A stretch of 64,000 bases of DNA from Macrostomum lignano (lineage: Eukaryota), in contig NIVC01000172.1 of assembly GCA_002269645.1 (NCBI GenBank), positions 272,558-336,557 on the forward strand, written 5' to 3'. The notes under the pieces were generated by a model, which had not been told where the DNA came from, searched no databases, and was given only the letters and a program-made list of their open reading frames with translations. Every line of letters begins with the position of its first letter. Position 1 is the first letter of the stretch. The position numbers were made by a program, and so were the translations under genes. Of this stretch, positions 19,163 to 64,000 are shown in pieces.

Positions 19163-19348
19163 CTGGATATTATTGCCGCTCTTGCCAATGACCCGGCTAA
19201 CCAACTGCCTGGGCACTCTGTACGCCTCCTCAGTGTACTCCAGCATCGCTCGGGCACGCCGGCAGGCCTCGGCGTTGTCTCCGTAGATGCGAAATACGCC
19301 CTGGTCTTTGTCCAGTTCCACTCCAGATACGCCGTGCACTTGGCGGGC
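19163..19348 (-). CDS. FMR1: FMR1/FXR-family gene, exon 4 (KH1 end and KH2 start)
   Basis: AAG|ARQVHGVSGVELDKDQGVFRIYGD...RVPRQLVSRVIGKSGNNIQ|GTGTGT matches FMRP [24 protein letters not shown]...QVPRNLVGKVIGKNGKLIQ; 186 bp. Confidence 0.93.
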
Positions 19349-19439
19349 CTTGTAGAAGAAAGCAGACAAATTACAGCGGGATTTCGAAGAATCTCAGGGT
19401 CTACTTTGGAGCGAACCGCACTCTTCTATCTTGGATGAT

Positions 19440-20699: not shown

Positions 20700-20993
20700 G
20701 GTTAAAAAGAGGCAGATAAGCAGGCTGGAGAGAGGCAGATAAGCAGGCTGAAGAGAGGCAGATAAGCAGGCTGAAGAGAGGCAGATAAGCAGGCTGAAGA
20801 GAGGTAAATAAGCAGACTGAAGAGAGGCAGATAAGCAGACTGAAGAGAGGCAGATAAGCAGGCTGAAGAGAGGCAGATAAGCAGGCTGAAGAGAGGCAGA
20901 TAAGCCGGCAGGAGAGAGGCAGATAAGCAGGCTGGAGAGAGGCAGATAAGCAGACTGGAGAGAGGCAGATAAGCAGACTGAAGAGAGGCAGAT
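20700..20993. repeat. 20-bp minisatellite (AAGAGAGGCAGATAAGCAGG/CTG variants) in FMR1 intron 2
   Basis: Direct periodicity. Confidence 0.93.
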
Positions 20994-21014
20994 ACATTAT
21001 ACAGTTGCACAAAC

Positions 21015-21397
21015 CTTCGCACGAGATCGCCGTGAATCTCTGGCTCGGCCACCCGATCAGCCACATCGTGAGGGACTGTGATGTCGCGCCTATACAGCCG
21101 AACTCCTGCCAAAGGCTTAGCGGAACCTCGCAGTCTGACCCGATTCCGATCGACAACATCCTGAGCTCCGGAGTGCTTGAACACGCACACAACAAATTCG
21201 CCTTTGACACTGCGGACCGTGGCTGGCCACCAGCAGGCTTCTGCGGAGCTGAACACTTCCACTTCCTCGTTGTCGCTTAGCGAGGGCTGAACACAGCTGT
21301 CGCCGTAGACATAGGCGTCATTGAGCGGCACGGATGCAGTGTGACCAGTGCTGTCTACGTACTCCACAGTCGAGTCAGTCACGTTTTGAATACTCAG
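21015..21397 (-). CDS. FMR1: FMR1/FXR-family gene, exon 2 (Agenet/Tudor domains)
   Basis: Acceptor TCTAG|LSIQNVTDST...EEVEVFSSAEACWWPATVRSVKGEFVV...DITVPHDVADRVAEPEIHGDL matches FMRP DEVEVYS...CCWWLAKVRMIKGEFYV...[20 protein letters not shown]. Donor AG|GTTTGT (phase 2) chosen because it joins exon 3 in frame. Confidence 0.88.
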
Positions 21398-33610: not shown

Positions 33611-33985
33611 CTAGCTGGGACTCGCAGGTAACTTGCGCAAGGCGCAGTAGACTCCCAAGTGCAGGGTCTCTGTCGCCTGGGATATAGATCGAGGCAACGA
33701 GGCACTCCGTGGAGAGAGATGATTAGATTGGATGACACAGAGGTCTCCATCTGAGAGATCAGTCCTCAGCCAAGCCCGGAGATGGCTGGCAGCGAGGATA
33801 GCCGCTCTAGGGCGGCTGTTCCCCGGGCCACACACATAAAAGTCAGAGTAGCCAGAAGGAATGTTGGGCAACTTACCATTGCGCATCCAGGGTCCCTGGA
33901 TCAGGATGAGGCCTGGCCCGTACAGCTCATCAGATTTACTGACGCAGATACGCAATGCTGTAGATTTATTTGCAGACAGAATTTC
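33611..33985 (-). pseudogene. Apurinic-like endonuclease N-terminus of LINE ORF2, frameshifted and truncated
   Basis: LQINLQHCVSAS, then after a frameshift LILIQGPW...SRPRAAIL...LSDGDLCVI; these match the non-LTR APE motifs QxNLxH, DxxLIQEPW, PRAxI, SxxDL. Confidence 0.8.
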
Positions 33986-34144
33986 GCTCCTTTGGCAGCG
34001 TGTGGAGCTTTATTTATGCTGTATTAAATGCAATAGCTGGTTAGAAATCCGGGCCATCAAGGAGACTTGGACAGCAAATCGTCCTCGTCTCAGGCCGTTG
34101 GGGCTTGACTGGAAGATGGGAGTTGGTCGACGTCCATGGCCTCC

Positions 34145-35558
34145 TCACCCCCACCAGCCCCCCCCCCCAGCAAAGTCCTCGGGCTCCGATGACAGGATGG
34201 AGGAAGCTTCCTCATCTGCATCTTTGCCTTCAGACCCCACCATAGTGGCCGAGGAGAGCTTGGATTCTGAAGACCCGGCCTTATCCTCAACTCCTTCTCC
34301 GACTGGCAGGTTCGGTTCTCGGGGCTTGGCCGGAGCCGTCACCGCGGTCGTCGAACTGCTGCTAGCAGAGGGGCGAGACGCAGCTCCGGCTTTGGGATCG
34401 GCTTGCACCTTTCCTTGGGCCTTAGACTGCGCCCCGCTCTTGCTGGAGATGTCGGGGTTGGCAGTAGCCTTCCCTTTGGCAGACTTTCCTCGGCGCATCT
34501 TGAGCTTGAGGGCACCCAGCTGGAAAAAGGATCCATTAGGGTACCGACTCGCCCAAGCGTTGGAAAGGCCGAGGACAATTGAGTTGCCCGTCTCCCCCCT
34601 GCGGACTTTGCGGTGATACACCAGTCCACTAGCAGGGAGGTCGGGGTTCAGACGCAGTAGGACCCGGCGGACAACGTCAGGTCCAGCTGCGGTGCTCTTA
34701 GCAGGGACAAAAACCACATAGGGTATTGTCTTTGGACGCCGGCCTTTGCGAAGAAAAAGAGCTCCAAGGAGCATCCAAGAAGACTGTCGGCAGCCGCTGG
34801 AGCAGCTGCTGAGCGTCCTCCTCACTACTAGAAACAATGAGAACGAATGTGCTTCGCAGCACCATCCGCTCAATGCCGATGGAGATTCCCTCCTCGACAG
34901 TCAGCTCAATCAGATAGGAGTCAATGGCCCTCCACACTTTTTGAAGCTGATCAGTGATCCAGTCCTGGTCGCGACCTAGAATGATCACTCCTGGGATTTC
35001 GGCCTTGGCCTTCGCCGCAAATGTAGCTCCCGAAGGAACCTCCTTGTTGGCAGTGGCCATTTGTTGCGCCGTGGTTTCGGCCTCAGCAGCCGCAGCAGCA
35101 TCTCCAGGGAGCGCCACCGCTGAACTACCGGAGCTTCCACCGGCCGGCCCGTCTGGTTGCCTTGGGACGCCAGTCGCTTCAGCATCTATGGTGGACGCCG
35201 CTTTGGCCCCCGCAGCTCCCTTCTTGGCCTGCCTTTTGGCGCGTTGCTTAGCGCGTTTGCGCTCAAGCCGAGCCCGCTGAGCTTCGTCGGATCTGCCAGA
35301 TTTGGCCGGTCCTTTAGGCTCAGAGCCCGCGGTTCCCTTAGATCCACCAGCGGAGCTGGCAGGTCTTTGAGTACTTTGGTTTTTGTAGCTCTGGTCGGAT
35401 CTGCCAGCAGAGCCAGCCGGTCCTTCCTTTGCCACAGTTGCATCAGTCAGTTGGGATCTGCCAGCAGGGCCGGCCGGTCCTTCTGACTGAGGTTGGGGTT
35501 TAGAAGGGTCCCCATCCCTAGATTTGGTTTGTTTGTCCATAGTCGGCTCGAAGGCCAT
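34145..35558 (-). pseudogene. LINE ORF1 (gag-like, DUF4780-like), frameshifted near 34750-34800
   Basis: Two overlapping ORFs (34698-35558, 34145-34873) join into a low-complexity N-terminus followed by VVFVPAKSTAAGPDVVRRVLLRLNPDLP...GNSIVLGLS, resembling ORF1 of R1/LOA-group elements. Confidence 0.6.
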
Positions 35559-37604
35559 GAAAAAGGTTGGTGGGCTACCCTCGAAGGGGCGCGGTACCCA
35601 CCCGGCCGCTCCACCTGACCGGGCAGTAGGCCAAAAGAACCCTCAAGGCTGGCCCGACACCAGGAGGGGGACCGCCAGCGACCGGACTACTCCCCGGCCT
35701 TCCAGCCCATCGGCACGGTCGAACACCTTAGGCATTAGAGGGTACGTTGAGCAGTACCACGGCCTGCGGACTGGTAGCCAGACCCGCATACCCAAGTTCG
35801 GCAAAAACCACTGGATGGGTCACCAGCGCCGGAGCCCTAGGGTCTGCCTTGAACACTCGCGGGGACGAGTACCCCTGAGTCGGCTTGCGAAACAGCGTGG
35901 GGGGGGGGGTCTGCGGCTGCCAGCGGCAAATAGAGGGTGCAGACCTCCCACCAGCCTTGACCTGCTGAAGATAGGGGCAGGCGTGGAGCATCGCAGACCT
36001 TAGCCCATGGGCCTGGTCTGTCTCATACTGTCTCATTCTGTCTCATAAAAGTCTAGGCTAAGCAAGATAATAAAGCATTGGCATAATGTACTGAAATGTA
36101 TATCGCCATACACAATTCACAATACAGCATAGGAGGCCTGGCTAAAGTGCAACACAGGGCCCAGCTAAGCTCTATTCATAGTGCATATTGTCTTTTCAGA
36201 TGCAGTAACAAAAATAGTTAGGCTACTAGGCTTTTTACGAAGATCGGTTCCAGAACCAGAATCGGTAGGAAAGTGAAAAGCTTCGAACCCATTTTATGTT
36301 CGTCAGTCTTTATAATTTAATTAAGTCTTTCATTGACTTCGCTTCGTCTTGGATATGACAAAAACAGAGTGCTAATATATCAATAATAAAAAATGACAAC
36401 TTAAAATATATTTTACTGTTAAAGTGTAAACATGGCAACCGATCAAGAAAATTTCTCAAACCGAATTCCAGAATCGGATCACGGTTCTGGTACCGATTCT
36501 GAAAACGGAACAGACAATATGAAAAGCTTCGAACCGATTCTGATTTTGGAATCGGTAATATGAAAAGCCATTTAAGATTGACTTCTATCTACCCTCTACC
36601 TTTGATAAAAAAACACAAAAATGTTGCGAACAAATTAAATACTTTGAATCGTGCAGTCTAGAAAGGTCAAGAATGTGACAATATATGAAAACAAAATATA
36701 AGCGAAAAGAAGCTGATTATACTCAAATAAAATGTTTGCATATAATTTTTTTGCATTCAATAGTTAATTCAAATTTTCATAATTATTCTGTTATTTCTTT
36801 CTACATTTATTAGTCGATTTTACGTCACTTCACACCCATGCCCAAAGCTTATACATTTGTTAGTTTTGACTTTAATAAACAGGACTGCTCTAGAGAGAGT
36901 GCTCTCAAAAACGAACTTCTATACTATCTGTGAAGTTTTTAGTATAATATATAGCCTCAACTATCGGTTAATTGTAAAAAACAGATTCGCCATTAAGTTG
37001 TAACAGATGCAATTGAAATTGTAATCAATTGAAAAAGTTGCAATTATGGTGTGTAACGAAATTGCAATTTTTTACAATTTTCTTGCATTATATCGATTTT
37101 TAGCGCGATCCCACTCATCTGGTGCTTTGGGGGAGAAACGCCGCGACTACCCTTTATGACTTCCCCCCAGCGCAGCTCACGCGTTTTACAACGTTTGCCT
37201 TGCCTGTTTATTGAAAATTCCTTCGACAAAGCAAAAGCAAAGCAAGAGTAGCTTTCTTTGTAAAGAAATTTAGCTAGCCAAAAAAGAAATCGTGAATGCT
37301 CGCCCATTTTTCGAATGTCTTGAACGTACGTTGGCGCGAAAGCCGCTAAAACTATAAAAAAAATACAACATCCGGCTGCTGAGATTAAAATTGTTGGCCT
37401 TGTCTTGCAGAGCTTAGACAAATACAGAATCTGTGCGTTTTATTTTAATCATAAATTGGATGCCAGTCAGATTTTTACGTGTGGTGGCAGATGTCAGAAT
37501 TCGTGCAAAAAATCGCCAAGCAGAAATTGGCAAATGCAACTGACTGACTTTGGACGGAAGCAACCTTCGACTGTGAATTTGAATTTAGATTTTCACTCAA
37601 CATA

Positions 37605-39060: not shown

Positions 39061-39712
39061 CCAAGCAAGTCCACGTCAACGCCGCGCATCCTTGCAGAAG
39101 TCAGGAACCAGAAGGTGAATGCTCGTAATACAGGCAGCAGTGTGCAGTCGGATAACAGGGCAAATCGGAATAGGTTTATAGAAATTTTTGCAAACTTTCC
39201 AGGCCCCGACTGTAGAAAATCAACAAGTTAACAAGAAAACGCAGTTCTGCAGTGCAAGCGTACACAAATTCAGCTCGAATTTCCAGACAGAAAAACAAAT
39301 GGCCTCATTAAAACAACCTTTTTCGCTGTTCAAGAACGTGCTCTGAATCCTTAAAAATTCATTCTGCTGGGAGGTATGCAAACACTCGTCAAGTAATTTG
39401 TGAAATGATGGGTTAAGAGCGCGCACGTATTGGTTGCGTGAAGCGAGACCAGGCACACCGTGGCGTCGTCAACAAGTGTTAGCTTTAATCCGACTCTCTC
39501 CTCACCAGCCTAAGTTAGGGGCGTTGTGACGCAAATTGCATCGCCCACAGTCGAGATGGGCGTGGTGTAAATTGCGTCACTTTGGTCTGGACTCTGAGAA
39601 AAGTTGACTGCTGCATAGTTTCGGGTGGAAACTTGAACATTCTGCTGAGCGTGAGGTGTCATCTTGCTGTGACTACAGTCACAATGACTACAGTCACTAT
39701 TGTGACTGTAGG

Positions 39713-40418
39713 CAGTGGCGTAGCCAGGAATTTCAATTGGGGGGGGGGCCGGGTTGGCTTGGCTGGCCATGCCTTATGCCATTGCCACTTTTGGCGCCGC
39801 AGGCACTCATATTGGCGCCGCAGGCACTCATTTTAGCGCCGCAGGCACTCATTTTGGTGCCGCAGGCACTCATTTTGGTGCCGCAGGCACTCATTTTGGC
39901 GCGGCAGGCACTCATTTTGGCGCCGCAGGCACTCATTTTAGCGCCGCAGGCACTCATTTTAGCGCCGCAGGCACTCATTTTGGCGAAGCAGGCACTCATT
40001 TTGGCGCCGCAGGCACTCATTTTGGCGCCGCAGGCACTCATTTTAGCGCCGCAGGCACCCATTTTGGCGCCGCAGGCACTCATTTTGGCGCGGCAGGCAC
40101 TCATTTTGGCGCCGCAGGCACTCATTTTAGCGCCGCAGGCACTCATTTTAGCGCCGCAGGCACTCATTTTGGCGAAGCAGGCACTCATTTTGGCGCCGCA
40201 GGCACTCATTTTGGCGAAGCAGGCACTCATTTTGGCGCCGCAGGCACTCATTTTGGCGCCGCAGGCACTCATTTTAGCGCCGCAGGCACTCATTTTAGCG
40301 CCGCAGGCACTCATTTTGGCGAAGCAGGCACTCATTTTGGCGCGGCAGGCACTCATTTTGGCGCCGCAGGCACTCATTTTAGCGCCGCAGGCACTCATTT
40401 TGGCGCCGCAGGCACTCA
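39713..40418. repeat. 21-bp minisatellite (GCGCCGCAGGCACTCATTTTG/A)n preceded by a CAGTGGCGTAGCCAGG TE-like terminus
   Basis: About 30 copies at 39789-40418; CAGTGGCGTAGCCAGG at 39713 resembles DNA-transposon/MITE ends, but no matching right end was found. Confidence 0.9.
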
Positions 40419-41104
40419 ATTGCCTCATGGTTTTTGGTACCCGCCGCACCCAATCCCCCCCCTCCCCAGGCGATGCATTTTATTGCTCCATAAATGTTGA
40501 AATGTCCCCAGGATTTTTCGTAAGAAACAGAAATGCATGCCACACACAAGTAACTTGCACAACGGTAAAGATGGCAGTAGTCCAGAAGCAAAACATTCCA
40601 GAACCCACTTATCCTAGGACAAAATTTATCAACTACAGCCTAGCTGAAGCTGATGGTCGCTGAACTGCCTTAACACTACACGATCCCTTACAATGAATGC
40701 CTCTCGCTGCATCATGCATGACAATCGATATAGATATAGATAGACATACCGTCAGCGGGGTCAGTAAACTATCTGAAACTACTACATGATTTATACGTTC
40801 TGATCTTCTGCCAGCGATAAGCGGAACCTCTTTACCATCCCTTCAAATGCTGCAGATTAGATCCAGGTGTGCGCACTGTATATAGTTAAAGAAAAGTACG
40901 GAAAAACAATATATATAAACTGCAGTATTATACGAAGACAAGTAGCTTCTTCGTAAAAGGCCATAGTTTCAGTGGAACGACATTTTTTTCTTCCTATATG
41001 TTTTTCTATTGCGATTCATACAGAGACACGAAAATTCCAATAAAAACCCACAAATCAAGCCTGAGCATCATCAGTGATATTTTAGTTCAGCAGTTCCAGT
41101 CATT

Positions 41105-42571: not shown

Positions 42572-43661
42572 ATGTCGTCAACCAGCTACTGCCTGCCGAA
42601 AGCCCTCAGTGTGATTGGGAATGTCACTGCGAATGGCACCGGAAGCTCTGCTGACGATGCCTTATCCGTGTACGAGGTGGTCTTCTACGCTTTGCTTGCC
42701 ACCGCGGCCAGCGCCGTGACGGCGTTCGGCAATCTACTGGTTCTGGTGTCTTTCCGCATCGACCGGCAGCTGCAGACGGTCAGCAACTATTACTTGATGT
42801 CTCTTGCGGTAGCCGATCTCCTCATAGGCTTTGTGTCGATGCCTATCTATACTGTCTACCTGTTGGTCACTTACTGGCCATTTGACATTATAGTGTGCAA
42901 CCTGTACCTCTGCTTTGACTACACAATGTGTAACGCGTCTGTAGCCAGCCTCCTTATTATCTCCATTGACCGATACCGCTCGGTGACGAGTCCCCTTATC
43001 TACAGGAGCCAGCGAACTCCTAAACGCGCCCTGATAATGATCACCTGTGCCTGGGTTGTCTCCATCATCCTATGGAGCCCCCTAATCATCTTATCTTCGG
43101 CCACTAAGGAGGACAAAGTTGCCACAGTCTGCCAGGTGGAGTTCATCAACGACAATCCCTACCTGACATTTTTCACGTCAATAATGGCATTTTTTCTTCC
43201 TGTAACCGTCATGACGATTTTGTATGTCCGCATCTTTCGCGAGACGAAAAAGCGCCAACGCGAGCTGCAGAGTCTTCAAGCCGGATGCGGCGGTGGCGGA
43301 GGAGGATCCACAGCGGCGGCAGCATCGTCGAACGACGAATCTCGCACGCGTCACCAAAATCGACGTCGTCGCTTTGACGGCAGATCCTTACTGCGACGCT
43401 GCGTCCGCGGTTTAGTTGACAGCGACGACGACGGGGGCAGCGGCGACAACAACAACGACGGAGACAGCGGCGGCGGCGTCGGCGGCGGAGCAGCCGTAAC
43501 CGAGGAGGAAGCCGACTGCTGGGAGACAGTGCGCGAGGACCGGCCGGTGTTCACGCAACATTTCCCCAGGTCGACGTCGTATTTTCGAGTCAACTACCAG
43601 GCGGGCAGGCGAGGCAGACCGGCTGAATCTTCGCTGACGTCGCTGCCTGGAAACTCAACCT
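42572..43661 (+). CDS. CHRM: Muscarinic acetylcholine receptor, exon 1 (TM1-TM5 and start of i3 loop)
   Basis: GNLLVLVSFRIDRQLQTVSNYYLMSLAVADLLIGFVSMP; TM3 Asp in CFDYTMCNAS...IDRY; TFFTSIMAFFLP; donor ACCT|GTGAGT phase 1. Subtype or orthology not assignable. Confidence 0.93.
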
Positions 43662-44044
43662 GTGAGTGCGAGGCTTCACAGAAAGTGTGATGCAATTTTA
43701 AACGGTGCAATTAATTTCTGCTCAAAACGAGATTTTGGCAGAGTTTTTTATTTTACTAGGTGGAGTATTCAAAAGACCGTAAGCTCTGCAGAGCGTGCAC
43801 TTTCTGTACGCAGTAATAATGGATATCCGAGACGATTCGAACATTTTCTTGAGTAGCGGCTTGGAAATCCGCCAGCTAATTCTTTCATTGTCTATTAAAT
43901 CAATGGTGGTAATTTGAGAACCACTCTCCGGAGGGTAATGCAAATGTATCAGATCATTCACATTCAGTCGTCATAATGTGCGAGCATTAAATAGAAAGAC
44001 TCAGAGATTTGTCATTCCAATATCCCTCCAATCCCATTCGACAG

Positions 44045-44308: not shown

Positions 44309-44874
44309 ATGTGTCATGGGCCAAGAAGCGACAGGCAATATTCATTCGCGAGGACAGCAGCAACAGACGCCTCAACAGCAACAGCAGCAACAGGTGGCGA
44401 TTGTAGTTGCTAACGCCTCAGCGTCATCTGCCGACGCCTCTGCCGCAACCGGTGCAGCCGCCGCCGACGCCTCCGCCGGGAGCCGATTTGACAGCGCAAA
44501 GTCGAACGCCACGGCTGACAGCGGCATCGACAGCATCGGCGGCGGCGGCGATGGGCCGGCAGGTCTGCGCCGGGTCGGCTCCCCACCGAAGCAGCCGGCA
44601 CCAACGTCTCGTCGACCGTCGCACGCCCAGCAGCAGCAGCAGACGCAGAAGCCGCAAGCAAACAGCGGGCCAAAGACCAGCAGCAGCTCCAACAGCAGCA
44701 AAAAGGAGACAAAAAACGAACAGAAAGCAGCCAAGACGCTGAGCGCTATTCTACTCGTGTTCATAGTCACCTGGATACCGTACAACGTGTTCACGCTGAT
44801 CAGAGCGGTGTACAGGGCACACTGTCCGGACGAGTACTTTCGGCCGCTGATCCCTGACACACTGTACAATTTTG
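44309..44874 (+). CDS. CHRM: Muscarinic receptor, exon 3 (i3 loop end, TM6, ECL3)
   Basis: Acceptor TTTCTAG; EQKAAKTLSAILLVFIVTWIPYN with the muscarinic Tyr-Asn pair; donor G|GTGAGA. Confidence 0.9.
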
Positions 44875-45663
44875 GTGAGAGATTTTAAAGAGCATAGTAA
44901 ACTGTTATTTATCATTCTTTCTTAGACGGCGAGACTCATTACCATAGCTGTCAATTAATTCGTGACGATAGAATGGGATGAGACGTAAAATCGTCGTTAA
45001 AAGAAAATAGAAACGTCATAAGTTACTTTATTACCGTGTGCAGAACCTGCGATACGGGGCTGAAAGAAGAATATATTTTTCTTTGCACCACATCGGGTTT
45101 TGTTTGTTTCTCACGCATGGTCGTAGTATCGACAAGTACATTCGGTGTAGCGTCCTTGATGAATAATTTGTACTCAAGTACCATCAGAAAACAAAACGGT
45201 TCCTACAAGGCATGATAATCAAATATCTTCGTGATTTACTAATTTCGAATTTAAATGTGGAAGAATCCTCACAACTAAGATGCAGTTGAGCATTCTCTGC
45301 AAGCTCTGCGAAAACGAAAAAGAATTCCTGCCAGTTCAGCAGAGAAAAAAGAATCGAAAGCTGCACCTGCGACCAGTCTCACGACGCCTCATCGCTCCGA
45401 ACTCGCCAGCGCTCTCCCTCGCTCTCTCTCCTCCTACGTGATTGCAGTTCGGATAAAGGAAAAAACTCAAAATAAAATTGTACCCATTTTAAGCAGTAAA
45501 AGAAGGACAAAATCCTTGGAGATTGTCGATCTGGCCGGAATACAAGTAGAGAAAACTCGGACATTTTCACGCTTGAATGCCCTGACCGAGAGAGCTGACA
45601 CAGTCAGGGCCGGGGACCGATCCCATAGTTGACATTCTTCGAAGTGCCACTTCGCGTCTCTTC

Positions 45664-47364: not shown

Positions 47365-48199
47365 CCAATCAGAGAGAGCGAGAGAGAGAGGGGGATAGAG
47401 CTGAATAGCGACCCGCTTTGTTTTCTACCCCTAACCCTAACATTCTTTTTCTAGTCTAACCCTCAGCTATGCGTACATTTGGCGTACAAGCCTGCTGCAC
47501 CACCACCTCACTGAAACTCTAACCCGCACGAAAAGTTAAAAACTGAGTTTTGACTGAGTTGCACTTTATTAACTCTTATTTATTGATAATTTACTTGACC
47601 TAATAAGCACATAACTAATTATAACTATTTTTCACCTAATTATACCGACTGCACAGATGGTTTTATTGGCTCGCTCTTATCGCTGAGTTTTGATTATCAA
47701 ATCAAATAGATTTAATGGTAATTACTCCATTATTATTGAGATCCCCCAAATTTGGCAGATGGGACTTCCATTCTTAACAAAATCCATTGTGAATATATCA
47801 ATATGGTTTTTCCTGTCTATACATTTACTTACCGTCTGTTATGACTGCAGTTTAATTGACTGTAAAAAAATATTTGCGTGCCTTTGAATACGAGCTGAGA
47901 ATAATTGATTAAAACATATTTTAGCTTGACAAGCCCGTCTTTGATAGGGCTAGAATTTTGTGTTATTTTATTTCGGATGTTATATTGATACACCTGCGTT
48001 AACCTGCACAAATAATTATAAAATTATCTTTTTAACCTACACCAACGTTTGTGTTTCGCTTTATTTTATTCCTGCATACCTTCCTTCTGGTTGCATCACG
48101 CATCCGGTTTGATGCATGGCGTTTGCTGGGATGAGATGGTTATTACTGCACCGTGCACGATCCTCGTACTAACGGGAATAACAAAAAGTCTGTCTTAGT

Positions 48200-48660
<461 letters not shown>

Positions 48661-49369
48661 AGTGTCTGCCTGTTCTATTCTGTCTGTCTTTCAATTTCTT
48701 CCATTAACTCAAGAAGTTGCGCTGACTTTCTCTAAATTTGGGCTGACATCTGAGCCTCTATTTAGAGTCGCTCGTAGTCCGCCTGCCTGTCTGTCTTTCT
48801 TTCGCCAGCGCAGTGCAGCTTTCAGCATACAGCCCCCTTCTTTCTGTCCGCTTCCATTCAGCAGGACCACGGGCTTTGTGTCGGGCTTGGGCGCGCCACT
48901 GCCACTGCCCAGGAGTCGCCGCAGCCTCCTCTTTATAGTTTGCCCAAGGCCTCGGCTTCCCAAAACAGCTTTTGTTGTTAGTAGACCTCCATGGCAGTGG
49001 GTTTCAACTTTTCCCGTTTCCCAATCCTGTCCGCCCTGCCTTGTCGCAGATTCTGCGTGCCCAACTGCGCCTCATCTGCCTTTGAAAAACTCTTTCTGGG
49101 ATTTCTCGGCTGATGTTCGGGCCGCTTGGCTGCTTGGCTAGGTTAAACCAACAGCCGAAATTGACGACGTAATTTCGTGCGTTTATTTTTAACTCGGAAA
49201 TGGCATCAGCTGGCCGACCGACTAATCTCAAACAAAAACAGAAAAAAGATGGCGATCGAGATACATTTAAAAGAATGCAGATTAAAGGATTGGAAGGATT
49301 GGTTTGGGGAAGAAAGTTCGGGAAAAACTTATGACTGGAAGGAGTGCAGAGAAACATATGGTTAGCGGA

Positions 49370-49790
49370 GATGGATGCAGGGAGGGAAGATGGATGCAGG
49401 GAGGGGAGATGGATGACGAGAGGGAAGATGGATGCAGGGAGGGGAGATGGATGCAGGGAGGGGAGATGGATGCAGGGAGGGGAGATGGATGCAGGGAGGG
49501 GAGATGGATGCAGGGAGGGGAGATGGATGCAGGGAGGGGAGATGGATGCAGGGAGGGAAGATGGATGCAGGGAGGGGAGATGGATGCAGGGAGGGGAGAT
49601 GGATGCAGGGAGGGGAGATGGATGCAGGGAGGGAAGATGGATGCAGGGAGGGGAGATAGATGCAGGGAGGGGAGATGGATGCAGGGAGGGGAGATGGATT
49701 TAAGGAGGTATGGATGCAGGGAGGGGAGATAGATGTAGGGAGGGGAGATGGATTTAAGGATGGGATATGGATGCAGGGAGGGGAGATAGA
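49370..49790. repeat. 19-bp minisatellite (GATGGATGCAGGGAGGGGA)
   Basis: About 20 copies. Confidence 0.95.
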
Positions 49791-50586
49791 TGCAGGAAAA
49801 GATGGATGTATGGGCACAGGAGCAGCGTGTATGAGGTAAAAGCTCTAGCTAATGAGAGCCCTGCACGATCATGCAGCCAAGTGATTTTGTTTCCAAGAAA
49901 GCAACAAAACAAAGCATCAGAACCTCTTGGCGCCCGCTGCCACCAACTGTGCCATTGCGTGCGACCTGCGCGCGTCAAAGTTTGCAATTAAAACTTTCTG
50001 GAGGAGCGAGCTATCCTCTGCCACTAGGCGGATGGCAGAGGTCGAGCCCCAGCCTCTCTCGGGACACCAACCTGAAACCCGTCAGTTCGCGGCCCAGCTG
50101 AGCGGAACCTAATGATGGCGAGGGTGACGGGCCGGGGGGCTCTCGGCTCCGTCATTTTCTGCGGCCGATTTCCCCGGATCCCTTTGGGTTTCTCCTCTCT
50201 CGGCGGCCAGGATTTCTTCTATTAGCGAACTTTTACCGATCGCTTCGCTCGGCTGCTTTTGCTTTGCCCTACCTTATGCCGTCTGGCGGCTCTGCTTCGA
50301 GAAGAAGAGGGTTGGGGGTTGGGTGCTCTCTAAAAAAGTTAAAGATTTCGCATGTCAACTCGTCTGAATGACTTTGGCCAACCTTGAATGACTGGCTGGC
50401 TGGGAGAAGGGAGGGAGAAAGCAGGGCTCAAGTCAGAGCTGATGTCAAAAAAGCACCCATGCATCAGCTGCTGGGATGACTCAAGCATGAGAAGTGGCCC
50501 AACTCTTCAGTTTCACCTGCATCTTCCCTGGCTTCTCAACTTGCTTAGATATTCGTGTGTGAATTGCTCAGTACGCTCGTACACTA

Positions 50587-51160
<574 letters not shown>

Positions 51161-53863
51161 CAACTATTTATTTCAGGTCCAAAGGTGATCAGCTGAGGTG
51201 CCGAGACCGACCAGTCCTGGTAAAAGCGCCCCAGTCTTGATTCGGTTCCCATTTAACGGACAAACAGACCTCATATTACATGTGCAATACATTTTTATAA
51301 CTTGTAAAAATAAAAGAGTTACGTAAAAAATCTCGCCAGAGCTGCTGCATCGAGTAGCAGAACAGCTTCAGACAGACTGAATCGCTTGTACTCTATAATA
51401 TATGCTTCATACTGGACTGCCCTTTGTTTTCATCATCAATTCATTTCCTAAAAGCAGCAACCAGAAGCACGCCGGTTGTGTGCTTCGCCGTTCTCTCAAG
51501 TGCTGCCCGAAATTAATTCAGCATTCAAAAACTCTGAGAAGAGTTGGCCGCCAGATTTTGACTCAGAAGAACATGCAGCCACACACACCCAAATAATTGA
51601 TCTCCACTTGTGGGCGAGGCTGGTCTCTCTCCCAGATTTCCTACAGCTTTCGCTGAGCGATGCAATCTTTAAATAGGGAAATTGTGTGTGTGTGAGAGAG
51701 AGGAGAGATGGAGCTTTATGGCCTGGAGACCGAAATCTGGCAGACCGGTCCTGAGCTCATCGATAACGTTTTATTGAATGCGCTGGCCTCCAGCAGCTGC
51801 TCTCTCCTGCTGTGCAGTTCTTGAGGGCACTTGAGGATCGGGCCGTGCGTGGGGGGTAGCTATGAGACTAGTAAGGGGTGGCAAAGAAGACCCTTGGCCA
51901 AGTATTTCTAATTGGTTACATGCAACTCAGAGGTTTACTGCTGGCTTCATTTATTGATTAATTTTAATCAACGATGATTTCCTGTTCATTTCTGTTCTGA
52001 TAGGCTCCATGCAAGCTCATGACGTGCTAAAATATGTATCTATTTTTAACCGAGAAACGGTGTTTTCATAGCCATACTGAGCTGCCAATTACTTGTCATT
52101 CTGGCTTTATTGAATGCTACTCCCTTCAAGCTGAAGCTACGTAAAAGGTCACTCAGACACTGCCTGGCTCAAACGCAAGAATTAAAGCGATTTGAATGGA
52201 CTGGAGAGTCCTAAGCCAGAAAGTGCCTCCGAGAGTCCGTTCCCTTGTGGCTCGACCTCCCCCCCCCCATGTTCCAGCAAGGCGACCTTTGAGCCACTCG
52301 AGCGAGTCCGTCACCTATGATTTGATCAGGCAAATCATAACTGGATTATGTGACTCAACTGGGCCGTGCTGGGAGACGCCAACGTGGGGCAGTCTGAAGG
52401 ATTGACTTTCCCGGACTCGGAATCGGCGGTCTCAAAGTCTCGGCTTGAGCTGCCCATCGGTCTTCGTTCAAGTGCCGCTTAAGGTGTGCGAGAGAATAAT
52501 GACGATTCTTCAACTCTGAGTTAGTTGAGGCCCTCTTCTAAGCTTACTTTCCCAGACGGCTGAGTTGCGCCACTGTCGGAGAACTTGAGCAGTTCTCTGC
52601 AATCTGACTGTCGGTTGTCTGGTTAAAAATTTTCTGAAACCTTGACCCCCAGATTTTGTACTTCAGTGTTTTTTGGGACACTTTGATCCCGAGTTAATTG
52701 GGAAAATAAACCGGCAAATACTGCCTCCAGAAGCCTGTGTGGAGCGACGAATCAGTGGGGGGCGCCACGGTCCCCTACATCCAAGGCTACAGAGCTTTGA
52801 GCCTTGCTCAAGGATGCCTAGCTGGACACTGTCTTGGCTTTAGCCTTCTAAACCACTGAAGCGTTTTTCGCCATTTGCTCTTCTTAAAGCAATGTTGAAA
52901 TTTTAGCTGGGGAAAAGTTTTAAGTCTTGAATTTGTTTGGCACGCAAAGTCCCCATCCTCAAACTGTCTGTGTATCTATCCCTTTCTCTCTATCTCAGTG
53001 GTTCTTTCAGTACCGAGAGCCGGGTTTGACTTTTTTTCACAGTCTTCAAAGCAAGCCTTTTCGTTATTTTCTCGCTTCGCTGCGCCGGCAACTTTGAAAG
53101 GAGAAACGGCCGGCTCTCTTTCTTTTCGAGGGGAAGAACCGAAAAATCTTGCTGATCCAGTCCGACCGATTCCAGCCCGTAACACTCTGGATATGCTACT
53201 CGAAGTTGAAAGTAGCCATGTGAGCAAAGTAGCAACCAGACATTATCTACGATAAATGATGCTTGTTACAAGAACTGATGTTGCATGCCTGACTTGCAAG
53301 TAAATCTACGTACGGCAGGTAGAGCTCATTAGTTGGTTCGACATCAGTTTTGAATGCAGTGCAGGTGAATGCTGAGTTGAAAGGAATTCCTGAATTACAA
53401 TTCAGCCCCCTATGGCTATCCTTAGATAGAAAACGAATAAAATTTCCAACAAGACAGGCTGCCCCTATTTCTCTCGGGTTCCCTAGTCAGGGAATAATGA
53501 GCCCTGTTCCACCTTAGCTGCTCTACGTCATGAGCTAAAGGATTTTCCTCAGACAATATGAGAAGAGATGAGGTTTCCAAATGAATAGAAAGTATAGAGG
53601 AGACTCGTGCTGCATGGGGGGACGACCTGACTTTGCTTGGCTTCCAAGTCGTGTAATATTGGATGAAAATGCTGCACAGATCTGCTGTGCAGGCTATCGG
53701 AACAGATCGATATAAGAGTGCACCTGTTTGCACCTATCACTACTCCTACGATCGTAATTATAGGTTGGTAATCAAGTTGCATCCAGTTTTCAGTTCGCCT
53801 GCACTTAAACTGCTTGACTATTTCTTGTTTAGTGATTTCACCACAGAAAGTGTGAGCTTTTAG

Positions 53864-56831: not shown

Positions 56832-57488
56832 ATGCCCGAACAGAGCTGCGACTATCGAGTAGCCGTGTTCGGTTCCGCCGGAGTCGGCAAGTCCTCCCTG
56901 GTGCAACGGTTTATTCGCGGCACATTCAAGGAGGCCTACACCCCTACAGTTGAGGACACGTACCGCCAGGTTATTAGCAATGATAAACAGGTGTGTACGC
57001 TGCAGATCACGGACACAACCGGTTCGCACCAGTTCCCGGCAATGATGCGACTCAGCATGAGCAAGGGTCACGCGTTTGTCCTCGTGTACTCGGTGACCGC
57101 TCGGGCCAGCCTGATCGAGCTGAATACTGTGGTCAGTGAGCTGCGCGAGATCAAAGGCGCCGACATTGCCAGCACGCCGGTGATGCTGGTGGCGAATAAG
57201 TGCGACGAACCGGCCAGCAGCCGGGAGGTGAGCCGCGACGCCGGAGCTGCCGTGGCCGCCAGATGGAACTGCGGCTTCATTGAGACGTCGGCCAAGGAGA
57301 ACGTGAACGTCAGCGAAGCCTTCGTCCAGCTACTGCGCATGGACAAGGAGCGCGACATGGCGCTGCTGTGTGAGGCCGCCTGGCAGCAGCCCTTAGCAAC
57401 ATCCGGTGCCTCGTCCGGTAGAGGCCGCGGCAGCGGTAGCGGCTCAACAAATCGCAGATCGGGCAGTCGAAAGTGTGCCCTCATGTAG
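56832..57488 (+). CDS. DIRAS: Di-Ras small GTPase, intronless CDS, 218 aa
   Basis: [27 protein letters not shown]...[13 protein letters not shown] and [26 protein letters not shown] are DIRAS1/2 signatures; NKCD, ETSAK and C-terminal CAAX box CALM. Confidence 0.95.
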
Positions 57489-58429: not shown

Positions 58430-58540
58430 AGTTGCCAAATTCGTCCGGAAATCGGATAGCAATAGCACCGATTACATGGAGCAGTTGCCAAATTCGTCCG
58501 GAAATCAGATAGCAATAGCACCGATTACATGGAGCAGTTG
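58430..58540. repeat. 53-bp tandem duplication adjoining the left end of the transposon
   Basis: AGTTGCCAAATTCGTCCGGAAATC(G/A)GATAGCAATAGCACCGATTACATGGAGC at 58430 and 58483. Confidence 0.9.
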
Positions 58541-58545
58541 ACAAA

Positions 58546-59865
58546 GGGGATGTCAACTTAAGCACCAGAATGGAGCCCGAAGTTCAGCTCCGGACCAAAC
58601 CGACTGCAATCGATAACTTGTCGGCCCAGACGACTAGAATCGCCGAGACATCCCATCCGGCTCCCTTCCTTGGGGTCCCAGGGGATAAAGGGGATAAAAT
58701 GGGGATCTCATGTCAACTTAAGGCTCTGGAATGGAGCCCGAAGTTCAGCTCCGGACCAAACCGACTGCAATCGATAACTTGTCGGCCCAGACGAGTAGAA
58801 TCGCCGAGACATCCCATCCGGCTCCCTTCCTTGGGGTCCCAGGGGATAAAGGGGATAAAATGGGGATCTCATGTCAACTTAAGGCTCTGGAATGGAGCCC
58901 GAAGTTCAGCTCCGGACCAAACCGACTGCAATCGATAACTTGTCGGCCCAGACGACTAGAATCGCCGAGACATCCCATCCGGCTCCCTTCCTTGGGGTCC
59001 CAGGGGATAAAGGGGATAAAATGGGGATCTCATGTCAACTTAAGGCTCTGGAATGGAGCCCGAAGTTCAGCTCCGGACCAAACCGACTGCAATCGATAAC
59101 TTGTCGGCCCAGACGACTAGAATCGCCGAGACATCCCATCCGGCTCCCTTCCTTGGGGTCCCAGGGGATAAAGGGGATAAAATGGGGATCTCATGTCAAC
59201 TTAAGGCTCTGGAATGGAGCCCGAAGTTCAGCTCCGGCCCAAACCGACTGCAATCGATAAGTTGTCGGCCCAGACGACTAGAATCGCCGAGACATCCCAT
59301 CCGGCTCCCTTCCTTGGGGTCCCAGGGGATAAAGGGGATAAAATGGGGATCTCATGTCAACTTAAGGCTCTGGAATGGAGCCCGAAGTTCAGCTCCGGCC
59401 CAAACCGACTGCAATCGATAAGTTGTCGGCCCAGACGACTAGAATCGCCGAGACATCCCATCCGGCTCCCTTCCTTGGGGTCCCAGGGGATAAAGGGGAT
59501 AAAATGGGGATCTCATGTCAACTTAAGGCCCTGGAATGGAGCCCGAAGTTCAGCTCCGGACCAAACCGACTGCAATCGATAACTTGTCGGCCCAGACGAC
59601 TAGAATCGCCGAGACATCCCATCCGGCTCCCTTCCTTGGGGTCCCAGGGGATAAAGGGGATAAAATGGGGATCTCATGTCAACTTAAGGCCCTGGAATGG
59701 AGCCCGAAGTTCAGCTCCGGACCAAACCGACTGCAATCGATAAGTTGTCGGCCCAGACGACTAGAATCGCCGAGACATCCCATCCGGTTTCAAGTGACGA
59801 AGCTCTATTCAATTCGAATATCGCATTAGCGGGTGTATTTTATTTCAGCTATTATACATTGATTG
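58546..59865 (+). repeat. Left TIR: seven 160-161-bp units, a partial eighth and about 78 bp of unique inner sequence
   Basis: ATGTCAACTTAAG at 58550, 58710, 58871, 59032, 59193, 59354, 59515, 59676; the array stops at CATCCGG 59787. Confidence 0.95.
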
Positions 59866-60471
59866 TTAAGTAATAAAAATGATTTGCTCGTATCGAAACC
59901 TGTTAAAAATGCTGATCTGGAAACTCAGTTTGAAAAAATTAACTTGTAAATTCGTTTGGTTATTAGTAAGCAGAACTTTTGACGATAAACCGAAACCATG
60001 TATATTGGTAAAATAAAGAATATCACGCAAGGCTGTACAAGTTATGACGTAATGGATACAAAGCATATCATGCAAAGCTGTACAAGTTATCAAAGTAATA
60101 AAAACAAAGCATGTCATGCAAAGCAGCACACGTTTTTAAGCAAATAAAGTAACGCCTCTCACGCAAAGCTTAGTAAAATCATAATTGCAAAAGTTTCTCA
60201 GTCCTAAGAAACGGTTTTTGGGTTTAAGTTCTTTGCTTCAGTAAAAAATACTTCCAATTTTTAGTTAATTGTGAGTCTAAAAGAAATTGAAACAACTAAT
60301 TCAAAGCTTTTGTTATTTGATGTCAGTCTGAATTATCTTCACATGTAACCTATGGTACGTAAAGAATGCGTGAGATGACATTGTTTCTTAATCTGCATGT
60401 CCTTTAAAATCTGCAATACAAAACGTACAGTACACTCGCTTAAAACAATTGTATTTTCGCTAAAAATGCTT

Positions 60472-63408
60472 TTACGAGTTTAAAAGTGCAACGAGCACGA
60501 TGCACTCAGGCTCACGTACGAACGGGTTATAGTCTGACGTAACTTTCATGTCGTCAATTCTCGTCCACACACAGCTCAGTACGCTTGCTGTGAAATGTCC
60601 CGATTTCAGTCGGTTTCCATGGTGTGATATTGTGGCCACTGGCTTACCAAGTGTAGAAACACCCCCTGACCTTGAAGAAAAGCTTACAGGAGTTTGAAGC
60701 TTAAGGTGGCCATCCATACTAGCACGATCAAGATATATCAGGGTAAACTTTCCAGGTGTTACTACGATCTCTTGATTACAATCGCCCAGGCAATTGGCGT
60801 CCGAACATTTCACTACCTGAGGAGCGACAAAAGCGCAGAAGATTTTGTCTAAACTGACAATTGAGCGCTCAAATTGACAGAGAGGAATGCAAATCACTCT
60901 GTTATCGATTGTGCCAACAGGAACTTCAGCACTTGTGCGCTGGCAATCCCGACAAGTTTGAATGAGTGAAAATTCTGTGAAAGCATCTGATGACAGAAAT
61001 TCCAGATGTATTAGAAGCGTTTGAACAAATTCGTTGACGCAATGGTGCTGATTTGTTTGAAATGAATCTGGATGTTGCAACCGAACTGCCGTTAACAGTG
61101 GAGTGACTGTTGCAGACCGCTGTTGCATCTCCGTCAGAAGACGAAGCAGCTCTCGATGGACTTGGTCGTTGCTAGTCTCTTTTAAAATGCATCCATTAGA
61201 ATGCAGGCAGAGAAACAATTGCACTGCTGCATTTGCGTAGCACTGCAGGCCATTATTTGGCAACCCAAATAACTTCTTCGGCGAATTCAATGAACCAGTA
61301 GCATTTGAACTGTGCCTCTGTTCATCTTGCTGCGATTCAGCACTGTCTCTGCGAGGTGCATTTGGAGCTGGATGACCACCAGATTGATCATTGTAAAGAT
61401 TGGCAATCAGTGCTTTTGGCAAAGCACTGTCAATAAATCGGAAGCTGCTGCCGCACATGTTGTAGCTTTCGGGGTGATATGCATAACAGCCTAGCATTCT
61501 AACCACAGCCATAACATGACTGTCACACCCTGCTGTCCTGCTTCCGGCCTTTGAGGATGAAAAGTAGCCATGCAGACGCAGCAGCCCCGAGTCACGAAAT
61601 CCGAATCGGTTACCACTTGCAGTTTCGCAAATACGAAGGACAACTCGGTAAGTTTTTGACCGATGACGGGAATGAAGAACGGCTAAATATATCCAAGATG
61701 GCCTCCATTCTCCAAACTTACTGCTCCACCCCTTTGGTGGCGCTCGCTGATGAAACTTCCAGCATTTTAAATGGCTTGGCAGTTCAGAAATCAACAATTC
61801 GAAATCGCGCCACGAGTCTCCAGCGTAGCTACTGAGCACCTCATGAACTCTGACGTTTTCGATGTAGCGTTTTGACTGAAGAACGTGGTATGGGCCGATG
61901 CTAAGCTCTTCCAGATTTCTTTCGTCAACGCTGGGGAACCCTGAACTTTCAGGGTCCAGGGGATCCACTGCTGTCCATTTTCGGGTAGAACTCGTTGGTA
62001 TTCGAGTCAAATCGCAATTGTACTCAAGTTGCTCAATTTCGTCTAGCTCATTCGCAATGAAAAGACGTTTAGCAAAGTTCCGTCCGTATTCGAACATGGA
62101 GCAATCTGACCATGACGGCGGCAGACTCCTTGTAGCTTGAAATCCTGGATGCGAACGGTTGAATTTTGCCATGGAGTTTTCAATAACAACATCGAGCCGG
62201 CTGCGTTCGGTAAACTCTGGGGCATGTAGCCATTGGTACGGCTCCTGTCGCTCATTTATGCATTTGTCCTGCTTGATTGCAGCAAAGCTACATTCTACGA
62301 GATAACGGAAAAGCGTAGCGCAGCGACTTGTATTTGCTTCGATTGATGTAAGCTTTCCTGGTATTGATCGGTCACCAACAGGAGCCTCATTATTTACAAA
62401 TTCAAACTGCTCGTTTAGAACTCGGTCACCTGGACTGGTCGGAAATAGAAGCGTCGTGCAGCCTTTACTATTAGTCTCTATAAAGTCGCGGAAGTTAACC
62501 GAAGTTGGTGAACAAAGTTGGTGGCTGTAACCTTTGTCGAAAATGCCAATAACGTGATAATCTTTCTGTACAGAGCACAGAATGCGCAACAAAATGGGCT
62601 CTATTAGTCCTTCAGCCTCCATGTCAACTTGCATTGCAGTCAAATTCCCATCGCCCATTGTTGGCGAGATAGCGGCGGTAAGGGGAGCGGTGTAGATAAT
62701 TTTTCCTCTACTGTTGACAACCGCCATTTTTTTGTTCACATTCATTTTCTTGCCGGAAAAGTAAGTTCGAATTTGCGTGTGGTGTGAGCTGCTCTTAGGG
62801 AGATAAAAGTAAGTATGATCACCCACTAGAAGAACAAGCTTCTTGCCTTTGAGTAGTGTGTGAAATACACCGAGAATAAATTGATCGCGTACTACATTTT
62901 CCTCAAGCAGAGTCTGAATCGGAGTCGACGCTATCGACCTCGGTTGATATGGATCCCGTAGGTACTGCTCCTTGGCAATCTCCCAAAAAATGTCGCATGC
63001 TCTTTGGGCAGAAATGTTGAAATCGAAAGCTAATGATTGAAAGCTGCAACCTTGGCGAAGCTTCTTCAGGTACAAAAATATTCGAGATGGCTTTGTCAAA
63101 ATACGAAGGCGAGATACTTCTGGTAACATTTCTGAGAAGCTATCGAAATCACTATAGCTAAGACCGCAAATACGTTTGAACTCCTTCTCATTTGCGGTTC
63201 GTGGAAAAAGGTTTGGGTTCAAAAAAACTTTCACATACTTACCACCGACCGCAAGAAACTGAAGCGCCTCTCGTGCGTTTCTCGGAGGCGCGAAGGCTCC
63301 AGACGATTCAGATGAGCAGCGACCACATCTAGTCGTTTCGAGATGTCGGTTCAAATTGGCTGCTTTGCTGAATTGATGACCACATTGAGAGCAAGTAAAA
63401 TCGGACAT
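60472..63408 (-). CDS. 978-aa transposase-USP fusion: Zn finger, HTH, DDE_Tnp_4-like core, SWIM-like motif, ubiquitin-specific protease (C19) domain
   Basis: First ATG at 63408 (the ORF track starts at an upstream TTG). CSQCGHQFSKAANLNRH zinc finger; LYLKKLRQGCSFQSLAFDFNISAQRACDIF HTH; D (GDHT, 62820), D (FDKGY, 62538), E (RYLVECSF, 62295); GLPNNGLQCYANAAVQ Cys box (61242); HHGNRLKSGHFTA His box (60597); WTRIDDMKV (60555). Confidence 0.9.
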   Translation of the reverse strand: MSDFTCSQCGHQFSKAANLNRHLETTRCGRCSSESSGAFAPPRNAREALQFLAVGGKYVKVFLNPNLFPRTANEKEFKRICGLSYSDFDSFSEMLPEVSRLRILTKPSRIFLYLKKLRQGCSFQSLAFDFNISAQRACDIFWEIAKEQYLRDPYQPRSIASTPIQTLLEENVVRDQFILGVFHTLLKGKKLVLLVGDHTYFYLPKSSSHHTQIRTYFSGKKMNVNKKMAVVNSRGKIIYTAPLTAAISPTMGDGNLTAMQVDMEAEGLIEPILLRILCSVQKDYHVIGIFDKGYSHQLCSPTSVNFRDFIETNSKGCTTLLFPTSPGDRVLNEQFEFVNNEAPVGDRSIPGKLTSIEANTSRCATLFRYLVECSFAAIKQDKCINERQEPYQWLHAPEFTERSRLDVVIENSMAKFNRSHPGFQATRSLPPSWSDCSMFEYGRNFAKRLFIANELDEIEQLEYNCDLTRIPTSSTRKWTAVDPLDPESSGFPSVDERNLEELSIGPYHVLQSKRYIENVRVHEVLSSYAGDSWRDFELLISELPSHLKCWKFHQRAPPKGWSSKFGEWRPSWIYLAVLHSRHRSKTYRVVLRICETASGNRFGFRDSGLLRLHGYFSSSKAGSRTAGCDSHVMAVVRMLGCYAYHPESYNMCGSSFRFIDSALPKALIANLYNDQSGGHPAPNAPRRDSAESQQDEQRHSSNATGSLNSPKKLFGLPNNGLQCYANAAVQLFLCLHSNGCILKETSNDQVHRELLRLLTEMQQRSATVTPLLTAVRLQHPDSFQTNQHHCVNEFVQTLLIHLEFLSSDAFTEFSLIQTCRDCQRTSAEVPVGTIDNRVICIPLCQFERSIVSLDKIFCAFVAPQVVKCSDANCLGDCNQEIVVTPGKFTLIYLDRASMDGHLKLQTPVSFSSRSGGVSTLGKPVATISHHGNRLKSGHFTASVLSCVWTRIDDMKVTSDYNPFVREPECIVLVALLNS

Positions 63409-63644
63409 TACTAGCAAGTATAAAACGCAATCTGCAACAAATCTGCACCTGTCATAAAACTAAGTAAGAAAAACTGACCAAAACCTTAACTTCATTAATA
63501 TATCACTTAAAATATATCACTTAAACTAATGCTACAAATACTTGACGCACAGTATCAAAAATCTCTCGCCTAAAGTGGTCAAATCAAAACCGCGAAAACA
63601 TTCTCAAAAATCCGGAAAAATTAAACGACGGAAATATTACAATG

Positions 63645-64000
63645 CAAACAATATATAATAGCTAAAATAAAATACACCCGCTAATGCGATATTCGAATAG
63701 AATAGAGCTTCGTCACTTGAAACCGGATGGGATGTCTCGGCGATTCTAGTCGTCTGGGCCGACAACTTATCGATTGCAGTCGGTTTGGTCCGGAGCTGAA
63801 CTTCGGGCTCCATTCCAGAGCCTTAAGTTGACACGAGATCCCCATTTTATCCCCTTTATCCCCTGGGACCCCAAGGAAGGGAGCCGGATGGGATGTCTCG
63901 GCGATTCTAGTCGTCTGGGCCGACAAGTTATCGATTGCAGTCGGTTTGGTCCGGAGCTGAACTTCGGGCTCCATTCCAGAGCCTTAAGTTGACATGAGAT
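63645..64000 (-). repeat. Right TIR (inverted copy of the left arm), cut by the window end
   Basis: TATAATAGCTAAAATAAAATACACCCGCTAATGCG...GAAACCGG mirrors 59787-59856, followed by inverted 161-bp units from 63723. Confidence 0.95.

Follow-up and report, generated by a model that had tools for sequence, protein, structure and literature searches.

Does a cut-and-paste DNA transposon carry its own deubiquitinase? The question is raised by an open reading frame (ORF) near one end of a 64,000-nucleotide stretch of Macrostomum lignano DNA (contig NIVC01000172.1, positions 272,558 to 336,557; hereafter the window), which an initial annotation had described as a DNA transposase fused in frame to a ubiquitin-specific protease (USP, peptidase family C19). 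We examined this ORF, its relatives and its flanks, and consider that it probably represents a transposon-encoded transposase-deubiquitinase fusion under selection.

A single reading frame with two modules

The ORF list placed one ORF, stop codon included, at positions 60472-63408 of the window on the minus strand, where all features of this protein given below also lie. Translation from the first ATG (63408) yields 978 amino acids (aa) and from an upstream TTG 981 aa (60472-63417), with no internal stop codons. The uninterrupted 978-aa frame claimed by the initial annotation was thus borne out, and every peptide motif quoted there was present in the translation at its place. An AlphaFold2 model of the whole protein, built from an alignment of 82 family members, had a mean predicted local distance difference test score (pLDDT) of 86.2 and revealed two globular modules, with residues 677-718 modelled as a disordered linker. 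The low-complexity part of this linker (aa 677-714, 61267-61380) had a pLDDT of 27-40, and the linkers of relatives were not conserved. Viral papain-like proteases suggested that the protein might cut itself at a Gly-Gly in the linker; this idea was rejected, since the 'SGG' found there in the window protein is not kept by relatives.

The transposase half belongs to the DDE_Tnp_4 group

The window protein gave no direct match to Pfam DDE_Tnp_4 (PF13359), which the initial annotation had anticipated, even when E-values of up to 10 were admitted. An exhaustive HMMER search (phmmer, window protein as query) covering 1.84 billion representatives identified 131 related proteins (numbered P below). 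The nearer of these aligned over residues ~35-670 at 27-35% identity, and the farther ones were ordinary DDE_Tnp_4 plus HTH_Tnp_4 transposases. P0051, P0062, P0063, P0067, P0072, P0079 and P0091 were linked to the window protein by phmmer (E 1e-8 to 1e-4) and matched DDE_Tnp_4 strongly (7e-13 to 3e-22); the closer relatives P0006 and P0008 also exceeded the DDE_Tnp_4 cut-off. Homology to DDE_Tnp_4 is established through these phmmer links, and assignment to the PHIS group (PIF/Harbinger, ISL2EU, Spy, Pangu, Nuwa), in line with the IS5/PIF-Harbinger/ISL2EU type named by the initial annotation, is supported by this transitive homology together with a conserved D-D-E triad.

The catalytic core (aa ~190-380, 62269-62841) is defined by the family alignment, by the DDE_Tnp_4 scores of relatives and by the model, and contains the triad D197, D291 and E372. 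The motifs GDHTY (196-200), GDGNL (252-256), FDKGY (290-294) and RYLVE (368-372) mark its course, and D197, K221/222, D253, D291, P301 and R368-x3-E372 are conserved across the family. This order and its context fit the published PHIS signature D..K..D(GxxD)..D..P..R-x3-E (Han et al. 2014, PMC4122938), with the exception that the spacing from D291 to E372 (80 residues between) exceeds the published range. A model of residues 1-676 alone reached a pLDDT of 91.2 and a predicted TM-score (pTM) of 0.87, with the core modelled as alternating strands and helices at pLDDT >90. No significant solved homologue of the transposase module was found with Foldseek, the best matches being the P element and Tn5 transposases (E 0.1-0.7).

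Ahead of the core lies a helix-turn-helix (HTH) region resembling HTH_Tnp_4 (aa 104-142, 62983-63099). The match to PF13613 foreseen in the initial annotation was located there, yet at 22.7-24 bits it fell short of the cut-off of 27; the same profile was matched by 11 of the 82 family members (best 7.3e-7). The N-terminus carries a C2H2 zinc finger (aa 4-25, 63334-63399), which scored 18.6-20 bits against Pfam zf-C2H2, below the cut-off, and aligned with zinc fingers in the PDB; on the transposase side, a PDB sequence search with the whole protein returned C2H2 fingers only. Behind the core, a C-terminal module (aa 400-676, 61381-62211; pLDDT >90) is common to the whole family, canonical DDE_Tnp_4 proteins included, and closes in the remnant of a SWIM-type finger (aa ~612-645, 61474-61575). 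Most relatives have a full CxC...CCxH finger; the window protein keeps C628 and H631 (GCDSHV) without the CxC pair, this first Cys pair having been lost in the lineage of the window and contig L001. The Pfam SWIM profile gave weak matches in 2 family members.

The C-terminal half has the motifs and predicted fold of a USP

The C-terminal domain (aa 715-978, 60475-61266) matched Pfam UCH (PF00443) over residues 715-958, corresponding to positions 2-237 of the 254-position profile; its score of 37.5 bits (E=2.6e-9) clears the curated cut-off of 23.9. The C19 USP domain proposed by the initial annotation was therefore recovered with the profile it had named. The Cys box NNGLQCY (718-724) supplies the putative oxyanion residue N718 and catalytic C723, the His box SGHFTA (936-941) supplies H938, and WTRIDD (948-953) supplies D952. 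The finger motifs CRDC (819-822) and CSDANC (868-873) retain all four zinc-ribbon cysteines (C819, C822, C868, C873). USP12 was the best match in a PDB sequence comparison, with the Cys box, His box and WxxxDD aligned as expected.

Structure prediction gave the same picture. The C-terminal half was modelled as a USP fold (pLDDT mostly 80-94), and a Foldseek search of the PDB matched it at probability 1.00 to USP1, USP18, USP35, USP36, Ubp8, USP15, USP21 and USP14, with target TM-scores of 0.5-0.57 for USP matches. The top 50 PDB matches were all USPs or USP-fold coronavirus papain-like proteases. Judged by profile and by model, the matches of this half to USPs are far beyond chance.

The catalytic Cys, His and Asp/Asn and the oxyanion Asn were retained in 8/9 aligned lineages, at 25-35% identity; P0014 is a fragment without the Cys box and has Ser in the Asp column. 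Catalysis by the domain, with ubiquitin or a ubiquitin-like modifier as its substrate, is likely. The QQDAxEF box read by the initial annotation is present as QHHCVNEF (787-794) in a degenerate form, in which the Asp column holds Cys (aa 790, window 61039-61041). Cys occupies this column in the window protein, P0007, P0014, P0183 and P0193, and Asp is kept in P0022, P0033 and P0046. In canonical USPs this Asp helps to hold the ubiquitin tail, and substrate recognition may therefore differ. The substitution may have altered the hold on this tail in particular lineages, and it may leave room for another ubiquitin-like substrate.

We also compared the domain with cellular USPs. Its fold and catalytic motifs are common to USP1, USP12/46, USP18, USP35/36 and Ubp8, and it is 24-29% identical to stand-alone USPs of small eukaryotes, which sit among housekeeping genes. 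The window domain differs in being minimal (~260 aa), without accessory UBL, DUSP or ZnF-UBP domains, in its Cys-for-Asp QQD box and in its covalent tie to a transposase. All-against-all BLAST of USP domains demonstrated no orthology to any particular USP subfamily. Two of the stand-alone USPs (L014:5342-6364 and L015:8001-9143; 24-26% identity to the window USP) are encoded on compact, intron-poor eukaryote contigs with neighbours that include ribosomal S27e, TCP1, SRP54 and myosin; they are cellular USPs and not transposon genes.

The fusion recurs in diverged relatives

Relatives with the same fusion were sought beyond the window and were found in independent assemblies of distant relatives, several of them multi-copy and several derived from ocean metagenomes. 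Transposase and USP occur in one ORF in P0010 (1048 aa), P0022 (955 aa), P0033 (1119 aa), P0183, P0193, P0195 and P0197 (the last four 1010-1380 aa) and in P0046 (1639 aa), which has N-terminal C2H2 fingers in addition. P0007 supplies the C-terminal part that was missing from the P0001 lineage: its N-terminus overlaps the tail of contig L001, and a USP follows. Altogether the fusion recurs in at least seven further lineages below 50% identity (P0010, P0022, P0033, P0046, P0183, P0193 and P0001/P0007). Identity to the window protein spans 22-51%, and the sources are Logan, JGI and ENA assemblies, those of TARA Oceans among them. A protein identical to P0033 was present on 19 contigs, of which the six retrieved represented six samples (three from TARA Oceans) with DNA >99% identical, and the P0010 cluster comprised 12 distinct intact variants of 1048-1050 aa.

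A word-indexed protein search identified a single relative, on JGI metagenome contig L001 (3300040801). This closest relative (L001:900-3023, 51% identity) has decayed: a stop follows residue 560, the conserved SRTAGCDCHV comes next in another frame, and the contig ends right before the USP. No further copies or closer relatives with flanks were found in the metagenome-contig collection, with either the window protein alone or a 3-sequence alignment as query. Some relatives have no USP (P0003-P0006 with their cluster members), and nothing USP-like was found downstream of P0004. In P0017 (634 aa) a USP fragment stands N-terminal to a transposase fragment, the reverse order, which may reflect a gene call across two adjacent copies.

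The P0033 and P0010 lineages have a separate upstream ORF1 (454 and 580 aa; L002:1568-2932 and L013:202-1944) that opens with C2H2 fingers and has no family match beyond them. A comparable region is fused at the N-terminus in P0003-P0005 and P0046. The window element has no separate ORF1 and has one C2H2 finger left on its transposase.

Selection and history of the two halves

Selection on the two halves was measured in the P0010 lineage. In two more diverged pairs (6-7% protein difference), the ratio of nonsynonymous to synonymous substitution rates (dN/dS) was 0.15-0.16 for the transposase; the USP gave 0.39-0.48, with a significant synonymous excess (P = 0.002 and P = 0.026). These values indicate purifying selection on both halves in this one lineage. 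In a rough neighbour-joining tree of transposase cores, the sister of the window group was formed by canonical DDE_Tnp_4 proteins, and lineages with a USP were dispersed through the window group. All-against-all BLAST of the USPs recovered one group of the window, P0007, P0014 and P0066 and another of P0046, P0069, P0083 and P0022; the other transposon USPs were as distant from each other as from the cellular USPs of small eukaryotes. Given this dispersal and these roughly equal distances, either a single ancient fusion with losses or repeated captures may account for the pattern.

Long inverted arms frame the gene

The initial annotation placed the ORF between terminal inverted repeats (TIRs). 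Inverted repeats are indeed present, although they proved to be long arrays of a 161-bp unit whose outer ends lie beyond the window. The left arm is an array of 7.7 copies with 98% matches (58550-59787), followed inwards by an 88-bp unique, non-tandem part (59788-59875); the right arm consists of the corresponding 88-bp unique part (63635-63722) and a 161-bp array in opposite orientation that meets the window end (63723-64000). The arms at 59510-59875 and 63635-64000 are 97% complementary over 366 nt, and the single 161-bp units on the left show 98-99% complementarity to the right-hand array (63723-64000). Since the right array continues past the window end, the true termini and any target site duplication (TSD) lie outside the view. 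A 53-bp tandem repeat of 2.2 copies (58430-58545; Tandem Repeats Finder) stands just outside the left array and may belong to the left end of the element. Between arms and gene are two AT-rich stretches: one 5' of the ATG (63409-63634), read as presumed promoter and 5' untranslated region (UTR) and free of ORFs, and one 3' of the ORF (59876-60471), presumably the 3' UTR, in which degenerate 45-bp repeats occupy 60010-60148 and no ORF has a family match.

The duplication differs by group, being TWA for Harbinger, AT for ISL2EU and none at AAA|TTT for Spy. The relatives did not supply termini: six P0033-lineage contigs share sequence from about L002:866 to beyond the end of L002 with no recognisable TIR, their sole left-flank difference depends on two flank variants, and the L008 contig was equally uninformative. 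No second copy of any element part was found in the other 57 kb of the window, and an Rfam search of the window gave no match.

The rest of the window contains several apparently ordinary genes. Directly left of the element is an intronless-looking gene for a DIRAS-like Ras GTPase (56832-57488, plus strand), and an intronless-looking gene for a CHMP6-like Snf7 protein lies at 12047-12688 (minus strand). An aminergic-type, rhodopsin-family G protein-coupled receptor is divided between two plus-strand ORFs (42572-43690 with transmembrane segments 1-5 and 44316-44888 with 6-7); the split flanks a long low-complexity third loop, and an intron or a frameshift may explain it. Exons of what appears to be an FMR1-like gene comprise an Agenet-domain ORF (17050-17652; weak Pfam match) and an RGG-rich ORF downstream (20702-21382), both on the minus strand. 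Together, the GTPase, the Snf7 protein, the receptor and the Agenet ORF suggest a metazoan genome. A GC-rich island at 33800-36000 (~60% GC against ~44% elsewhere) holds overlapping ORFs of 240-290 aa on both strands without a Pfam match. Long mini- and microsatellite arrays are very numerous (1-4100, 13700-15500, 18500-19900, 39600-40700 and 48100-51200) and yield spurious long ORFs in several frames.

Alternative explanations

Several observations weigh against a mobile element with a selected, working deubiquitinase. The window protein itself reaches no Pfam DDE_Tnp_4 score, Foldseek yields no significant solved counterpart of its transposase, and the window lineage has lost the first Cys pair of the SWIM-type finger and the Asp of the QQD box. 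In the P0010 lineage the USP changes more rapidly than the transposase, and one close pair gave a dN/dS of 0.74, not significantly below 1 and uninformative. The existence of relatives without a USP means that the USP is not essential for the family. Finally, one copy is visible, with both termini and TSD outside the window, and the mobility of this copy is therefore presumptive.

The USP could be dead or repurposed. It might bind ubiquitin or a ubiquitin-like protein and so bring the transposase to ubiquitinated chromatin, or it might cleave SUMO, NEDD8 or an ISG15/Fubi-like modifier instead of ubiquitin. Such a role would suit the altered QQD box of the window protein and the four relatives that share it, the compact domain of ~260 aa, the weaker constraint than on the transposase half, and the structural matches to USP18 and USP36, which act on ISG15 and Fubi, respectively. 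A pure binding module, however, needs none of the oxyanion Asn and catalytic Cys, His and Asp/Asn that 8/9 lineages keep, and the zinc-finger cysteines are mostly kept too. We regard this explanation as unlikely.

The same locus could be a domesticated host gene, that is, a former transposase-USP fusion that is no longer mobile and is kept for a function such as chromatin or repair regulation. Both Harbinger-type transposases and transposon-borne deubiquitinases have been domesticated (PMC9741609), and the single copy in 64 kb, the fully intact ORF, the adjoining host genes such as that for the DIRAS-like GTPase and the degenerate SWIM-type finger would all fit. Against this, inverted repeats of 97-99% identity, more than 1.3 kb long on the left, still frame the gene, and domesticated genes normally lose such repeats. 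The DDE triad is intact, the relatives are multi-copy with near-identical copies across many samples, and the closest relative has decayed through a premature stop and a change of frame, as expected of transposon copies. Domestication thus appears quite improbable here.

An artefact (an assembly chimera, read-through of adjacent genes, or a private, functionless capture in one copy) could draw on the capture of host gene fragments by transposons, the disordered, unconserved linker and the relatives without a USP, yet the same domain order stands in one ORF across independent ENA/TARA, Logan and JGI assemblies at 22-51% identity, the uninterrupted translation of the other fusion ORFs rules out gene-calling errors across frameshifts, and the USP half has conserved catalytic residues and a dN/dS <1, so that on these sequence comparisons a chimera or one-off capture is excluded and the artefact as a whole is given almost no chance.

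Comparison with known transposons

The window protein has the D...K...D...D...P...R-x3-E layout of PHIS elements, a putative HTH ahead of the core and flanking inverted repeats. By description, the element resembles Spy, with a single ORF, a transposase part of ~700 aa and possible long TIRs (PMC4122938, PMC11304231, PMC4482050). It departs from PHIS elements in its C-terminal USP, which the descriptions surveyed do not mention, in its longer spacing between the second D and E, in a divergence too great for a direct Pfam DDE_Tnp_4 match, and in inverted arms built of 161-bp tandem arrays. ISL2EU has a THAP domain and a YqaJ exonuclease ORF (PMC4482050), whereas the window element has neither THAP nor a second ORF. 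The Myb/SANT ORF of PIF/Harbinger is likewise missing; the ORF1 of the relatives is a C2H2 protein instead and seems to be the family's counterpart of the Myb/SANT ORF. PHIS elements do pick up accessory enzymes, e.g. TET/JBP (PMC12730594), and the published descriptions of PHIS transposons surveyed made no mention of a ubiquitin protease.

Helitron-like elements (Helentron/HLE2) are likewise eukaryotic DNA transposons whose main protein has a papain-fold, deubiquitinase-type domain, and UCH (PF00443) was reported in 2024 as stably included in HLE2, beside OTU and VTD (PMC11417382). In contrast to the window element, whose USP is partnered with a cut-and-paste DDE transposase, they move by rolling circle with RepHel and have neither a DDE transposase nor TIRs. 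No Rep or helicase domain was found in the window ORF or element (Pfam, ORF list).

MULE/KAONASHI, Zisupton and Ginger are DDE transposons that carry a Ulp1/C48 or OTU cysteine protease for a ubiquitin-like modifier. Their proteases are of another clan and substrate class (SUMO-type C48, or OTU), are combined with other transposase superfamilies and often stand in a separate ORF. A full-text literature search, which did not cover Repbase and Dfam, returned no account of a DDE transposase with a fused USP. The novelty suspected in the initial annotation is therefore upheld for the USP-DDE fusion and limited by the earlier report of UCH in HLE2. A PHIS-type transposon lineage with a built-in USP has apparently been undescribed so far, and the fusion adds to a theme already familiar from other classes of transposon; it does not open a new one.

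A proposed role for the deubiquitinase

In the explanation that we prefer, the locus would be a PHIS-type (PIF/Harbinger-ISL2EU-Spy) DNA transposon that moves by cut and paste and resides in a metazoan genome. The C2H2 finger and HTH would bind the element ends at sites repeated along the long inverted arms, for which the 161-bp units are candidates, and the RNase-H-like DDE core (D197, D291, E372) would excise and integrate the element. The flexible linker would tether the compact USP (N718, C723, H938, D952) to the transposase, so that an active isopeptidase would travel with it and remove ubiquitin locally. We favour a process in which degradative ubiquitin would be stripped off the transposase or transpososome, which would then survive long enough to act. 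Alternatively or in addition, ubiquitin may be erased from histone H2A/H2B or from PCNA/FANCD2-type repair factors at the donor or target site. Helentron VTD deubiquitinases are active, OTU domains being untested, and protection from proteasomal degradation has been proposed for them (PMC9741609); self-protection of the transposase is a possible, if tentative, main role of the USP. Spy-type relatives transpose in human cells (PMC11304231), so that wild-type, catalytic-Cys mutant and USP-deleted proteins would be directly comparable.

The proteins of the fusion family evade Pfam DDE_Tnp_4 and have no informative names in protein collections, where the named ones are called 'hypothetical protein'. 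Annotation of the family in marine eukaryote genomes is therefore probably incomplete. For builders of gene-transfer tools, both the compact USP and the principle of tethering could be of interest. In its broadest form, which we put forward with some reserve, the proposal is that of an ancient, undescribed PHIS lineage with an active built-in deubiquitinase, the first DDE transposase with a USP, and of host ubiquitination, whether of the transposase or of chromatin or repair factors where transposition takes place, as a general brake on DNA transposition that the element removes. Rolling-circle elements and herpesviruses carry proteases that reverse ubiquitin marks (PMC9741609, PMC11417382). 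Some DDE transposons carry SUMO-type proteases. If the proposal is true, the retention of a USP fixed to a DDE transposase in many diverged lineages would place cut-and-paste elements under the same pressure, and would suggest that the host controls transposition through ubiquitin.

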